Of a stretch of DNA of 64,000 nt, positions 20,431-36,701 are shown in pieces. Origin of the DNA: Trichosphaerium sp. ATCC 40318 (Eukaryota; Protista; Tubulinea); the NCBI GenBank assembly GCA_038496445.1, contig JALMLS010000466.1:558001-622000 (forward strand). The letters are read 5' to 3'. A program made the position numbers and the translations under genes. The notes below the pieces were generated by a model. It was not told the DNA's origin, did not search any database, and saw only the letters and a list, made by a program, of their open reading frames with translations. The first letter of the stretch is position 1, and every line of letters begins with the position of its first letter.

Positions 20431-20901
20431 CGATACATATCACGTAACAAGTATTTCAGTTTCCCATACCATCTCTCCTGTTACTTTCATCTTCTTACTA
20501 ACGCCTTTGGTGATCATTATTTGCTCCTCGGCATAGTAACTGAAGGCACTGAATGGTCATTTCTGACTAAACGCTTAATTCGTAGTAGCTGGCACAGGAT
20601 AAAAACATAGAACCAGATGATATCAACACCTCTAAAGCGTAACAAATCTCAAAAAATTCTGATTTGAGCCATTCTACGAACTGTACAATATCGGACTTTA
20701 CCGACATCGCTAAAGCCCATCACAACAGAATAACAGAAACTTTGGATGTAAAGCATAAATCTCGTAAACCCCATCCAGAAAGTTCTGCTAATTTTGCAAA
20801 TTTATTTTTTTTACCAAAAAAACCAAAATACAATCACAACAAGTTGTGAATCATTCGCATAAGGTTTCAATACAAAGTTATATCTACAATTGCTTGGTAT
20901 G

Positions 20902-21049
20902 GCAACTTCGCAGTTACAACTTGGATCTCCCGGCTTGGATCCCGGTACCTGGCGCATGCAAATCGCTGCCGACTAATGGGGCGCATCCGTCGCTTTGCAT
21001 GCGCCAGGTACCGGGATCCAAGGCCGGAGGGCCAAATTGAGAAAGTTGC
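20902..21049. repeat. tRNA-Ala-derived palindromic element, copy A
   Basis: Perfect 29-bp arms 20934-20962 and 20994-21022 match the anticodon-loop-to-T-loop part of tRNA-Ala; 31-nt loop; imperfect pairing extends out to gcaactt/aagttgc. Confidence 0.9.
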
Positions 21050-22661
21050 GGATCCAGATTCCGACCGAAACGCAATATAATGCGGAGGTTATTTATTCGC
21101 TTCTTAACGCCTGAAGCGATCTTTTAAACGCACAAAGAGCAGTATGGAGTGAGTTCCTCAATAGTAGAAGATAATATCACAGAGATTTCACATTGTTGTT
21201 AATTTATTGTTTAATGTGTTCATGTGTTGAGTCTAGAGGATAGGCCTTATTCTCAACGTTCAAGGTTGATGGCTTAGAAGATTTTAACTAGCATGGTATT
21301 GATAAAGTAGTTGTCGTATTGCTTCGCTGGTAGGATTAAATTTTCAGCTACACATAAGTATAAATGTGTTTCCACTTTTCTTCTTATCCTTCGTCGCTGG
21401 GTGGTTTCACATGATTTCAACTCTTGCTTTTCTGTTTGTTTGGAAATTCAATGGGTTAATGGAATGGCAAAGAGAAGGTGTGACGGTTGAGCACAAGAGT
21501 TTTTTTCTTCTCAACAAAACAGTTGCTAAAACAGTCGTTAAGTGTTTCTGTTAGTTTTGTATTGCTTGTGAAAACGACAGTAGTAGGTCCATATTGAACA
21601 ACACGGTATTTGACACACGTAAACACTCTAAACAAGCGAAAACAGTTTTTTCAACGTAATAAAGCTTGGAGAGCTTTCAAACAACGATATTATAGCCTTT
21701 GGCGCGTTAATACAGGTATAATATTATTTTTGCCTTTAACAGCTTTTAATTCACTTTTAACGTCGTAAATAAACGTAATGTCATCAGTTTGTCATTATTT
21801 CAACAAAATGGTACTTGGCGCATTTATTCAAAACACGCCAACCTCACCAAATCTGTTCCTATTTCATTCTTGTTTGTTGCTCCGCGCAGTCAATAACAGT
21901 ACAATAGCTATTGGCCTTACGGAACGTAACGATAGGGCAACACGTGTTGGTGACTGTTTCGTTGTACGTTTTTCGAAAACCAAACACATTTTTCGGCTCT
22001 GATGAGATTTTTCGATTAAATAACAACCAAATTGGGTTGCCTGTTACGTTTTAATTCGTATTGAAATGAGGAATTTAGAGTACTCACAAAAGAGGTTTTA
22101 GAAAGGTTTTTTTTTATCTTTTTTCAACTGTTTCGATAGAATTTCCATTTGCCTTTCGCCACGCGTGGTTCAAGTGTCAAAAAACATGAACTATCTGGTG
22201 GTTTTTAAATAAAAATACTGCGGTAACTCTAGATTGTGTTCAGTTGGGAATGGTAATACCAAAGCCCATTTACCATCAAAACTGTTACCAACGAAAAGCT
22301 TTTTTTTTGTTTTTTTTTTGTGTTCATTGATTGATAAAACAAAAATCTCCGTTAACGTATCTTAGGTTTTTTGGTAGGGTTTTTACCGTAGATTCAGAAT
22401 ACAATAAAAACACGGAGCTTTATGAAAGCTCAAAAAAAGTATATCACGTTCTAGAATTCTACAAAGATTTTACACTTTGTCGTTGATATACAACCATAAA
22501 TGACTGACAGCGATGATGAACCACCTACCCCAAGTACGCACATAACCTCAATAATCTCTTTGAGAAGATTACTACAGTTTTTGGGCACCAAAACTATCCG
22601 TGAAAAAGCTCTTTTTTAACCATAACAAACCATCAACAACTACCTCAACAACTACTCAACA

Positions 22662-25231
22662 ATGTCTCTGTCTACTACTACTTCCTCTCTCACACTCACC
22701 CCTACCCGTACAGTAATGACTAGGACAGACCTAGCCAAGTGTTCATGTATTAGACTTCGCGCAATAGCAAAGGCTTGGGAGATGACGCGCTACTCCAAAT
22801 TGCGAAAGACCGCTCTAGTTGAAGCCATTTACACAACTATGCGTACGTTGTTAACAGTTTGAAAGCTCTAAAATTTTTCGCTTTCTTTTTAACTATTCAA
22901 CTTACTGTCAACTTCGACTTTTATTCTAACTCACTTTAGACAACGAAGGAGATCAGTTGATGCTGGAGCGGGCCAGTTATCAACGCGAAGAAGTTAACAA
23001 CGCCCTATTCCGTATCAAAAAGCGTAAGCGTAACGCCAAGTCCAAAGCCAGGCAGGCTGAGTACGATGCTGAGGTTGCTCGTAAAGCTGAGGCTGCTCGT
23101 AAGGCTGAAGCTGACCGAGAAGCTGAAGCTGCTCGCCGAGCGGACATAACGGTTCAAATGGGTGCCTTTGCTGCCCAATTCAACGCAAAGCTTGCTGCTC
23201 AAAAGGCTGAGCATGACAAAACAAACGCAAAGCTGGCTGCTCAAAAAGCCGAGCATGACAAGACCAAAGCTGAACATAACACCAAACTTACAACATTGGA
23301 AGGCGAATGTACAGCCTTGAAAACTACAACTAAACGCCTTAAAGTTGGTTTGGCGGTTACTAATTGCGCGTTCCTTCAAATGGCGCTTCTAATCGCCTTC
23401 AGTTCGATAAGAGATAAGACTCTCGATGAAATTATAGAAAAAGGTACGTACACTTTTTTTTTTCGAAGAATTTTCTAAATCACTAACTTTTTTCCCTGTA
23501 GACTACGACTGTCTTGGTGTACACGTAGATGCCCTGGCCATTCTTGTCGCTTTCTTCTATGACGTTCTGGAAAATATCATCTACCCTGATGATTTTCTTT
23601 ACGAAAACGGTGCTCGTAAACGGGACTGGAAGAAGGAGACTACGTTTAATGTTTTCATTGGAAAGTATTTCAAGGTCCGCCCAGACCTCCTGCGCCACAT
23701 GCTTGTGCATGACACACATGTACAAAACGTAGTTGGGGAAATACCTCAACACAAAATATCAAAGCCTGACCTTGCCGTTGTACCCAAATCTATAAAAATA
23801 GGCGAGAACGACAAGGTCAAGATACACCAAATCGCCATAATTTGGGAACTCAAAAAGGGAACTGGTACGCTTTCTCTTTTTTTTTTGTTCTTTTTTTTTC
23901 CTCTTTCTTTCATTGTACTAATGTTGTCTTAGCGGATTTTACAACTGCAGAGAAGGGGCAAACATGGCACTACCTCCACAAGCTCCTTTATGCCCAAAAA
24001 ACACGCACGGAGGCATATGCCATTCTTATGAACTTTGACAAGGTAATGTTCCTGAAGATTTCGATGGCAACACGTGAGGAGCTGAAAAACCCAAGCTACT
24101 TCACGTGTGGGCCGTACGACATTGATGGTGTGGGCGGGAAATATCTGTTCACAATGCTCAACCAAACTCCTGAAGCGCTGGGCTTTCGCATCAAAAAATT
24201 CAAGTATAAAGATACGGAGTACTTGGCTGGCGGAATTTTGGGTATTGGCACTTCGGCTGTAGTTTATTCTCTACAGATTCCTACCAAAGATGGGAAGGAC
24301 ACAAGAATAGTTGCGGTCAAGGAATTTAAACAAGACCGTAAACAGTTTATCCATGAAGAGATCAACATATACAAAAAGCTTAAGAATGTTTCTAGCGTAC
24401 CTAACTTGGTACGCAACCATCTTTCCTTTTTTTTCTTTGGCTAACGTTTTTTTATTGTAGGTTCATTATACACAAGACCATATTTTTTTAAGTCCCGTTG
24501 GCACAAGAATAAAAAATTGGGGTGATGTTGAAGACACTTATGGCTTTATATCTGGCATAATTAATACACTAAAGGCCGCGCACGAAATGAAAATAATTCA
24601 TAGGTATGTCCAACTATTTTATATGCAGCGACATTCAATGTGTCAAATTTTTTCAGTGAAGCGCAAGTGCCACTTTATGTTCGCTGCGTTTTTCTTTTCA
24701 TACTAGATGTGTCAGTACTGATATTAGTTTAGGGATGTTTCCACGTCTAACATTTTGTTTGCGGACAAAAAACCTTTACTAATCGACTGGGGTTGTGCTG
24801 TCGCCCCTGGTGTACCTGTGGTTATCGCAGGGACGCTAAAATATGCACCACATCATGTCTTGTGTTCCTTTGGTTCTAAGAAGCTTGTCAGATACAAACC
24901 TTCTGATGACCTACAGTCGTTTGTGTTCGTATTAGCTTATCTATGTGGCCAAAAGAAAAAAAGTTGGGATGCTGCTTATGATAAGTGGGCAGCTATCACA
25001 TGCAAGCCTAACTATGATGCCAAGGAAGAAGACGATCTCAGAGAGCTATTGTTTCGCGAACGAAGCATGAACATGCTTTTTGGGTGGTCGAATGCTCTCA
25101 ATCTTGCTAAGAAAGCTGATTATGATGGCCTTATTATCGAACTTGTAAACATGCTTAAAGATATGAGATCTTATTGGAAGTGTAAAGACTGTAAGCGCTA
25201 TAATTGTGATTGTAATAAAAAAATAGAGTAA
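22662..25231 (+). CDS. Crinkler-like protein: Rho-N-like HeH header + coiled coil + PD-(D/E)xK REase-like domain + protein kinase
   Basis: LRAIAKAWEMTRYSKLRKTALVEAI; KPDLAVV..IIWELKK..KGQTWHY; LGIGTSAVVY, VAVKEF, IHRDVSTSNIL, LIDWG, GTLKYAP, DDLQSF. Confidence 0.85.
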
Positions 25232-34025: not shown

Positions 34026-35236
34026 TTTGGCAATAGAGTGATTGGTTGTCAAAGAGAATGGATCGATTAATCCGGCTTAACTCATATTTATAAGATACAA
34101 ATGTGAGTTGCTGTATACACGTCACGGTGTGAAAAGTGGTACGAAAGTTATAAATTGTTTAGCACAAATTTACTTGTAAACTTTGTCTTAAAAGCACTAG
34201 GTGCTATGAACGTATGATCAACACAAGTCCGCTATTTTCTCCACCCAAACTTATTAGTTCAGTTTTATAGTTCAGTAGTATCGGAGCAAGATAGGTACTT
34301 TTTGTACATCATTTTTTCTGAAAATAAGAATAAAAACAGTTATCGTCAGTTGGAAGCGTGTGAAAAGCGCCTTCAAGCGTCTTGTGCAATGTTGCATCAA
34401 TTAAGGCGTGTGAAGTATAATTCAGTGCATTTGAAATGCTGTAGAGTTGGTTCAAGGTTGAAGTACGTTTATCATGTATTTTGTTTTAGACAAAATAACG
34501 TTAAGTTAAGCTTTTTATTTGATTGATTTACAAATTTGATCAAATCATTTGCGCTCAAGTCGCATGTACAGTGCTTCTTCTCTTCTATTTAGCCTCATTA
34601 CTAATTATTTTACAGCTTGAGCCTAATTACATCTACGGATAGTCCATTTGGCATTGGTTGTTCCTTTGATGAGTCTAAGCTTAACAAAGAAGCTTAAAGA
34701 GGTACCAAACGACCACAAATACTTGAGAGTAGAAGAAAAACTGCATTTACTGACAAACAGTAGATGTTGTACTTCCAGTAAACGACCACATAGAGATGTT
34801 ACCAAAACGGCTTTTAAAAAGGTCTCACAAACACAAGCCCATCATAGCAGTGATGAAGAAGTATCTCAGCAAACGTTGAATCTAGGTGGTAAGATTGGAA
34901 ATGGCACAAAACTCATAGCATAGACAACCTCCCAAAGAATACATGACAATGAAGCAGTGTTGTAATGAAAGATTCTAATTCTACACTCAATGGCTTTATA
35001 GGCTGTTATTGTATGGTGATAGATGATTAGGTATGTACTTGCAAGGGACAATATTGAAGTAGCATGCACAGAATAATATCCAAGTATTTACAGATAAAAA
35101 AAAAACCCTGTAGATTATGTGATAAAAGGTAAAACTTGTTTGAAGGTTCTGCTAGACACAAAGCTATCACATGGGGCTGTGCTTATGTGCATTTAGAAAA
35201 AGAACCCCAGAGTCTAGGATTGGCTTTCATCATGAG

Positions 35237-35309
35237 GGGCGCGTGGTGTAATTGGTATCACGGTCGCTTTGCATGCGACAGGTACCGGGATCGAAGCCCG
35301 GCGTGTCCA
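35237..35309 (+). tRNA. tRNA-Ala-TGC: tRNA-Ala(TGC)
   Basis: GGGCGCG/CGTGTCC-A acceptor stem with G3:U70, anticodon arm GTCGC-TTTGCAT-GCGAC, T arm CCGGG-ATCGAAG-CCCGG, T5 terminator at 35316-35320. Confidence 0.95.
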
Positions 35310-35370
35310 CTCCTCTTTTTATGCTTTACCTGCTGTTAACATGCCTTTGTTTCTTTTTTCTTTCTTCTCA

Positions 35371-35426
35371 CCCGGTTCTACCTGTCGCATGCAAAGCGAC
35401 CGTGATACCAATTACACCACGCGCCC
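35371..35426 (-). pseudogene. 3'-truncated inverted copy of tRNA-Ala
   Basis: Identical to tRNA nt 1-48, then GAACCGGG; no T loop/B box and no 3' acceptor strand. Confidence 0.85.
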
Positions 35427-35850
35427 CTCATGATGAAAGCCAATCCTAGACTCTGGGGTTCTTTTTCTAAATGCACATAAGCACAGCCCCATGTGATAGC
35501 TTTGTGTCTAGCAGAACCTTCAAACAAGTTTTACCTTTTATCACATACTTGCAGACAACAATACTTCACCAACCATGAAATAGTCACAGTAACTATTCCA
35601 TCAATTGACATTAGAAAGCCAATTCAACCAACAATGATAAAGAACTGCAAATAGTACTCTTGTTGAGTAAGGTCAGGCAGAGCTAAGCAACTTGCAGTGT
35701 AGTCTTGCAAAATATATTAGTAATATCTGTACAAACAATGTCTTTTTTCTGGTCCTGCTTTTGCTACATTTGTTCAACAGAGCATGTAGCGTCACAATAA
35801 ACAACAAAATAGATTTCACAAAATGATGTTTTGGTCGCTCCTGCAGTTTT

Positions 35851-35967
35851 TTGATCCGGGATTCATCACATGCAAACGTGTATGCATCTAATAGCCATTT
35901 CAACACCTTTGCATGCAATGGCTCCCGGGATCCAAGGTCGGGGATCAGATTGTAATTGTGAAAGTTG
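35851..35967. repeat. tRNA-Ala-derived palindromic element, copy B (decayed)
   Basis: gatccggg..cacatgcaaa-[31 nt]-tttgcatgc..ccgggatccaag..gatc..ttgtaattgtgaaagttg; same geometry and tail as copy A. Confidence 0.75.
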
Positions 35968-36701
35968 ACACTCCTAAAACCTTGCAAAGTGGGTTGTAAA
36001 ACGCTAAATAAAACAATCGCTACCAATTTACACCAATTTTCGGACATAACGAAATAAGAACAAGAATTGTGTTTCTTTTACAAAACTGCCCCAAATCACT
36101 ATAAAACAACTCCACGCACTGTTTAAAACATCCCACAATTTTTAGTGCATGGAAAAGCAACTCTTCATAAAGCTTTCATCTTTCTGTTATAACCGAGGTG
36201 CATAGTTGTCGTGCTTCCCCGATGGAAGGTTGTGGCTGATTATACTTCGTTTTAACTGATTGGGCTCTCGGGGCAATACTTTGTGGCATACTTCGCTTTC
36301 TCCCCGTTAGCCCTTTAAACCACCATTACAGCCACAGATGCACTAAGCGACACAACTATCTGCGGTGCTGCGACAGAGCTGGCATCGCTGAAGGATAGTC
36401 GTGACTTGCTTGTGCTAAAAACCTGAAATCATTTACTTCGCAAAAAATGTTGTTTTCTGAAAGAACCCTTGTGCCTTTAAGGACACGGATGAGCAAATCA
36501 TTCACTGTGTACCTTGGCACTGCTGTTGCACACTACGCGATCACCTCTTTTTGGTGTTACTGACATTGTTGATCTTCAGCTTGTGCCAAAAGCGAGTTTC
36601 TTACTCTTTTTCCTGTACTCTCTACTATACGTATTCCAAGTGTTCTACATGGCACTTTGTTCTTCAACAACATTAAGCTAGTTCCTACGTTATGTTGTAT
36701 T

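Follow-up and report, generated by a model that had tools for sequence, protein, structure and literature searches.

Copy A, a hairpin lying within the window (the whole 64-kb stretch of DNA that was analysed), is a real palindrome derived from tRNA-Ala, and its most informative feature is that the copy-specific derived bases are present on both of its arms, as they are in a second copy (copy B) found elsewhere in the window. The explanation favoured here, at a probability somewhat below one half, is that the two copies represent a non-functional tRNA-derived fold-back repeat, which would have originated in a single fold-back, been copied as a unit and had its arms corrected by template switching.

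Structure and setting of copy A

The core of copy A is comprised of two perfect 29-bp arms, at positions 20934–20962 (minus strand) and 20994–21022 (plus strand), separated by a 31-nt loop (20963–20993, plus strand), with the tRNA 3' ends of both arms facing outward, as an earlier note made from the bare DNA had proposed. Each arm corresponds to nt 32–60 of tRNA-Ala(TGC) and carries the same two changes, A42C and G57C, with 27 of the 29 bases matching the intact tRNA-Ala(TGC) gene at 35237–35309 (plus strand), which is of the source type of the arms and has its A box and B box intact; both the origin of the arms and the changes common to them had been correctly recognised. Beyond the inner arms the pairing is imperfect and continues through a degenerate copy of nt 61–73 and a 22–27-nt non-tRNA tail. 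On the left (X) arm these segments are located at 20922–20933, containing the degenerate T-stem and acceptor 3' strands, and at 20895–20921, a tail of 27 nt (both minus strand). On the right (Y) arm they are found at 21023–21034, where the G53-C61 pair is broken by C61G, and at 21035–21056, where the tail is shortened by a 5-nt deletion relative to the left arm (both plus strand). Because the imperfect pairing runs out to TGG....GCAAC / GTTGC....CCA ends, the unit spans approximately 20895–21056 (no strand assigned), the outermost few bases being uncertain. The element does lie at 20902–21049, where it had first been placed, but extends further on both sides, and the non-tRNA tail reported outside the arms is indeed present, with the correction that a shortened version also occurs on the right arm.

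Copy A is ∼160 bp in length and non-coding, with no ORF within the unit. Its stem lies far beyond those of shuffled sequences (z = −9.4 and −11.2), with no shuffle equalling it, bearing out the folding that had been expected of it, and copy A is the most stable 150-nt hairpin of the whole window. Perfect inverted repeats of at least 12 bp with a spacer of at most 100 are found only three times in the 64 kb. The surrounding sequence is eukaryotic and intron-rich, with a GC content of ∼37%. Ten ORFs of the window proved absent from the protein collection searched, the closest relatives being 49–53% identical and taxonomically mixed. The hairpin itself is intergenic, located ∼0.8 kb past an APC10 gene (Pfam match) and ∼1.4 kb ahead of the next gene, which has a coiled-coil and a kinase-like part. 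The latter gene (22500–25231) contains introns and encodes alanine/lysine-rich coiled-coil repeats followed by a kinase-like C-terminal part; the exons tried, searched singly, gave no Pfam match above the cut-off.

The loop of copy A is probably a degenerate remnant of the tRNA 5' part. Its last five bases (GTCGC) continue the tRNA sequence (nt 27–31), and the GGGGCGC found within it resembles the tRNA start (p = 0.003 in shuffled loops, post hoc). The suggestion that the right arm and loop together read as a D-arm-deleted tRNA is plausible on the strength of this post hoc match, with a colinear degenerate alignment to nt 1–31 also being possible (p = 0.06, or 0.32 without the last five bases). 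The tRNA segment nt 1–31 is exactly 31 nt long, the loop length of both copies, which would fit a reversal of copying at the 5' end of the tRNA.

A second copy at an unrelated site

Copy B occupies approximately 35810–35975, ∼0.5 kb downstream of the tRNA-Ala(TGC) gene, no other tRNA gene being present in the window. On alignment it is a decayed full-length homologue of copy A, with two full arms surrounding a loop (35877–35907, no strand assigned) that has the 31 nt previously ascribed to it. The left arm (35810–35876, minus strand) is strongly decayed and is the probable homologue of the right arm of copy A, and the right arm with its tail (35908–35975, plus strand) is identical to the left arm of copy A in 49 of 69 columns. 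The homology extends from end to end and stops at the ends of the unit, with the flanks being unrelated in every pairing (p = 0.09–0.98); the palindrome is thus present as a unit in more than one place, as had been supposed, and a larger shared element or a segmental duplication is ruled out by the lack of homology between the flanks. Searches of the 64-kb window with nhmmer and a covariance model revealed neither a third copy nor a single arm.

Whole-element alignment of the two copies scores 105 in opposite orientation versus 88 in the same orientation, and the loops align with p = 0.03 and 0.27, respectively, so copy B probably lies in the opposite orientation to copy A. The central ctaat that the earlier note took to be common to both loops is a same-strand match (p = 0.27–0.41, not significant) and, as the copies align better in opposite orientation, it is not evidence of homology. 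The tail, on the other hand, is shared as claimed, the right-arm tail of copy B matching both the left (p = 2e-4) and the right (p = 0.001) tail of copy A, and does not match the 3' flank of the tRNA gene itself (p = 0.3–1.0). The changed arm sequence said to recur in copy B was found as GATCCAAG on one of its arms only, the other reading GATCAAAA. Comparison of the outer arms gave z scores of 6.3 for A-left/B-right, 4.5 for A-right/B-right, 2.6 for A-right/B-left and 0.0 for A-left/B-left, a pattern that favours descent of both copies from a shared asymmetric ancestor whose two arms were of unlike type (X and Y). The number of informative sites in this outer zone varies with the alignment (0–2 grouping by arm type and 0–1 by copy); consequently, such an ancestor is the preferred reading and falls short of proof.

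Copy B carries several CpG-type changes, together with unpaired changes in its stem. The CpG figure for 35501–36000, the interval containing copy B, is 0.34 as compared with 0.87 for the window as a whole, making it the second lowest of the 500-base bins. The wider stretch 34500–36000, which holds the tRNA gene and copy B, is CpG-poor, with 0 CpG in the 121-base tRNA flank and 1 in 35548–35807; it is possibly a small methylated island, and no transposon ORF was seen in it. Copy A is most likely young or recently corrected, and copy B old and decaying. The right arm of copy B ends in CACTCCT (35969–35975), the same seven bases as are formed by nt 72–73 of the real tRNA and its trailer. The tail of this arm looks as if it had been inserted inside the tRNA 3' end, a post hoc impression from a feature that is absent from copy A. 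A match to GCAACTTGCAG at 35687, considered as a displaced end of copy B, is at chance level (p = 0.46).

A possible rearrangement is seen at the tRNA gene itself. A perfect 169-bp inverted repeat (35116–35284 / 35379–35547), comprised of the tRNA-Ala 5' flank and nt 1–48, faces the intact gene and lies 300 bp from copy B; its inner junction has three extra bases, after which an interrupted T-arm match begins, and both of its outer ends finish in TA. This inversion could be a recent fold-back or an assembly artefact, and, taken as a fold-back, it suggests that such events act at this type of tRNA-Ala. It fits the fold-back at short interrupted inverted repeats that characterises ODIRA-type inverted duplications (PMC11790251, PMC4689423), which yield large inverted triplications in place, unlike the dispersed 160-bp units seen here. 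The presence of a recent local inversion of a real tRNA gene so close to copy B is also what speaks for regarding copies A and B as independent local inversion scars of two tRNA-Ala isodecoders, or as an assembly artefact. Such an explanation is very improbable, as the two copies share G57C, a change at a position that is invariant among four real tRNA-Ala genes, and also share their loop length and a non-tRNA tail that the flank of the tRNA gene lacks. Moreover, a chimera would copy exactly, but the outer arms of copy A differ at 12 places and copy B is old, making an artefact unlikely.

Probable homogenisation of the inner arms and proposed origin of the palindrome

Within the inner 29 bases of the four arms, four sites group the arms by copy and none by arm, a result obtained with six alignment settings; the earlier note had overlooked this pattern. 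The copy-specific bases are, on both arms in each case, C42 in copy A and T43, G44 and probably C48 in copy B. Three unrelated tRNA-Ala(TGC) genes are the same as the window tRNA over nt 44–65, including G57, indicating that the copy-specific inner bases are derived. Independent mutation would give at least two of the shared derived bases of copy B with a probability of 0.11 and at least three with a probability of 0.011. In addition, none of the 12 differences between the arms of copy A is located in the inner 29 of 68 columns (p = 5e-4). Taken together, the copy-specific bases on both inner arms and the confinement of the differences in copy A to the outer arms imply either that sequence passed between the inner arms once the copies had diverged, or that the two arms of each copy were made from one template at birth.

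The former is favoured, with homogenisation of the inner arms being best explained by template switching during replication. Short-range template switching makes perfect stems in one step (PMC10710096) and repairs existing stems (PMC8794818), and it has been put forward to account for the concerted arms of palindromes (PMC6649704). The present palindrome resembles these quasi-palindrome hairpins in having a perfect loop-proximal stem of ∼29 bp inside a longer imperfect repeat and mutations mirrored on both arms, and the mode of working matches; it differ in that template-switch hairpins are single-locus events, whereas it occurs at several sites and is made of tRNA gene sequence.

The latter, in which the palindrome is born afresh each time from a monomeric tRNA-derived master with a SINE-like head and tail, is rather unlikely. 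Reverse transcription or a stalled fork would reach the tRNA 5' end, fold on the anticodon arm and self-prime, providing one template for both arms. This would explain the copy-specific bases on both arms without any conversion and would be consistent with the absence of the tRNA 5' flank from the loop; its main support is the loop length of 31 nt in both copies, equal to tRNA nt 1–31. The alignment of the loop to that segment is, however, only marginal (the p values of 0.06 and 0.32 given above), the microhomology for fold-back in the loop is only ∼2 bp and no monomeric member was found in the window. Furthermore, the outer arms are asymmetric in the same way in copies A and B, and their common G57C removes the B box that a SINE master needs.

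In the favoured explanation, that of a single fold-back followed by copying and correction, a tRNA-Ala(TGC) copy already bearing G57C and a 25–30-nt non-tRNA tail would have undergone a single fold-back in the course of DNA synthesis. The growing strand would have reversed direction on the upstream side of the anticodon and copied the segment from the anticodon to the tail a second time, leaving what remained of the tRNA 5' part enclosed by a pair of arms that face outward. The palindrome would subsequently have been copied whole to unrelated sites, of which the two copies described here are examples, by a passive or non-autonomous DNA-level movement that we assume. Finally, the loop-proximal arms would have been re-equalised in each copy by short-range template switching (quasi-palindrome correction), so that a new mutation comes to lie on both of them, with the outer arms diverging, which is the pattern observed. 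Against this stands the fact that the explanation is drawn from two examined copies, that both loops are exactly 31 nt yet align only with indels, a coincidence for which it does not account, that copy A has no target-site duplication and no mobiliser was found, and that the 169-bp inversion lending it support could be an assembly artefact.

Relation to known elements and possible transcription

Terminal inverted repeats bound by a transposase are usually most conserved at the ends and least toward the interior. Here conservation peaks next to the loop and is lowest at the unit ends, with the TGG....GCAAC ends being imperfect in copy A and decayed in copy B. No target-site duplication of at least three bases was found at the inferred ends of copy A; copy B lies between two runs of AAAA, a weak signal in A-rich DNA. 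Neither a transposase nor a longer partner element with the same termini was seen in the window or beside either copy. The description of the hairpin as MITE-like is therefore apt for its shape, which is short and fold-back, and not for its target site or its pattern of conservation. A true MITE, that is, what remains of a DNA transposon after internal collapse, with a captured piece of tRNA-Ala in its terminal inverted repeats (TGG...CCA) and with the transposase encoded elsewhere in the genome, would be short and non-coding with imperfect inverted termini and unrelated flanks, as is found here, and could have left the AAAA on either side of copy B. It is nonetheless improbable, given that the termini are the least conserved part, that no transposase adjoins either copy and that the duplication is lacking at A and weak at B. 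MITEs and short fold-backs such as thug-S of Dictyostelium, a repeat which also gives rise to miRNAs (PMC6161686), share with copies A and B their short, non-coding, hairpin-forming nature, dispersed occurrence and unrelated flanks. Copies A and B differ from them in their tRNA-derived arms and in being best conserved on the loop side; the missing duplication at A and the missing partner transposase set the present hairpin apart as well.

Similarity to tRNA-derived SINEs, including the chance palindromic pairs of SINEs (PMC11481361), lies in having a tail of non-tRNA sequence behind a tRNA-derived head and in the dispersed occurrence. Copies A and B differ from them in being a fixed palindrome with one shared 5' remnant and no A or B box, in having tails without an A-rich or simple-repeat end and in the absence of a monomer from the window. 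Membership among tRNA-derived SINEs was accordingly rejected on the A and B boxes, the 3' tract and the target-site duplication at copy A, despite the tRNA-derived head. Dada transposons use the anticodon or the A box of tRNA genes as insertion sites, encode a transposase, have no terminal inverted repeats and lie between 5' and 3' tRNA fragments of the same orientation (PMC3706591, PMC8869645). They too are tied to tRNA genes, and the inner edge of the arms (nt 32) adjoins the target of Dada-tA, a hexamer of the anticodon loop. In contrast, copy A has two inverted 3' parts, with tRNA sequence running into the loop on one side, in place of colinear 5' and 3' fragments with a 6–7-bp duplication, and has no ORF for a DDE transposase, the unit itself being an inverted repeat; a Dada insertion was rejected on both counts.

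Neither an A box nor a B box was found on either strand of copies A and B, both being found in the real tRNA, and G57C removes the B box, which the earlier note had described as altered. No DUSE was found near either copy, with DUSE counts being at chance level, and in Rfam only the real tRNA was matched. A normal tRNA was rejected, as ARAGORN detected no cloverleaf at thresholds of 80–95, and so was a circularly permuted tRNA, for which none of 7200 anticodon-junction constructs per copy scored. On sequence grounds, the unit is one without a polymerase III promoter that would make no tRNA, and it is most likely non-functional. Within 36131–36375, a DUSE-like 8-mer does occur ∼60 bases before a foldable stretch of ∼170 nt, probably part of a minus-strand gene; the foldable stretch (36190–36375) has z = −0.6, and 8-mer and fold are both at chance level.

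A functional hairpin-RNA gene is quite improbable. Transcribed by read-through or from an external promoter, its stem would be cut by Dicer to give antisense small RNAs directed against tRNA-Ala, or would bring about silencing of tRNA-Ala loci. The stem is very stable on both strands, a duplex of the antisense arm and tRNA-Ala could form with an energy of about −60 kcal/mol and copy B lies in a CpG-poor stretch adjoining the tRNA gene; moreover, repeat hairpins can yield amoebozoan miRNAs, as in the case of thug-S (PMC6161686). However, complementarity to the tRNA is expected from the origin of the arms alone, Rfam gives no match and copy B shows decay in the form of unpaired changes. The surroundings of copy A hold no A box, B box or DUSE, and the sequence thus lends no support to the hairpin-RNA precursor suggested in the earlier note.

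Searches with patterns of the palindrome, its arms and its tail gave nothing in viral contigs, bacterial and archaeal genomes, phages or plasmids, and the tail was not found in the rest of the window or in the viral contigs. One metagenome match (L001, 255–335) is due to chance, being a short REP-like palindrome between bacterial genes with no tRNA sequence. Three further matches, rejected as copies of the hairpin, are ordinary intact tRNA-Ala genes; these eukaryote-type tRNA-Ala(TGC) genes lie on giant-virus-binned contigs (L002, 4078–4152; L003, 5234–5308; L004, 8029–8103) and have the variable loop and T arm of the window tRNA (A15, A48, A54). In the limited literature searched, no description was found of a fixed palindromic unit of two outward-facing tRNA 3' parts. 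It is doubtful that the hairpin represents an undescribed, self-propagating class of palindromic tRNA-derived elements, either formed anew at each insertion by 5'-end fold-back reverse transcription or transferred in hairpin form, with stems that might supply the silencing machinery with small RNAs antisense to the tRNA.

If the copies merely reflect frequent fold-back errors at tRNA genes, they would constitute a clean example of tDNA fragility, of modest interest. If, instead, the family is dispersed genome-wide, it would be a hybrid of SINE-like raw material and a fold-back repeat, and would offer a natural multi-copy test of arm-to-arm correction, with every copy serving as a separate replicate of homogenisation by template switching.
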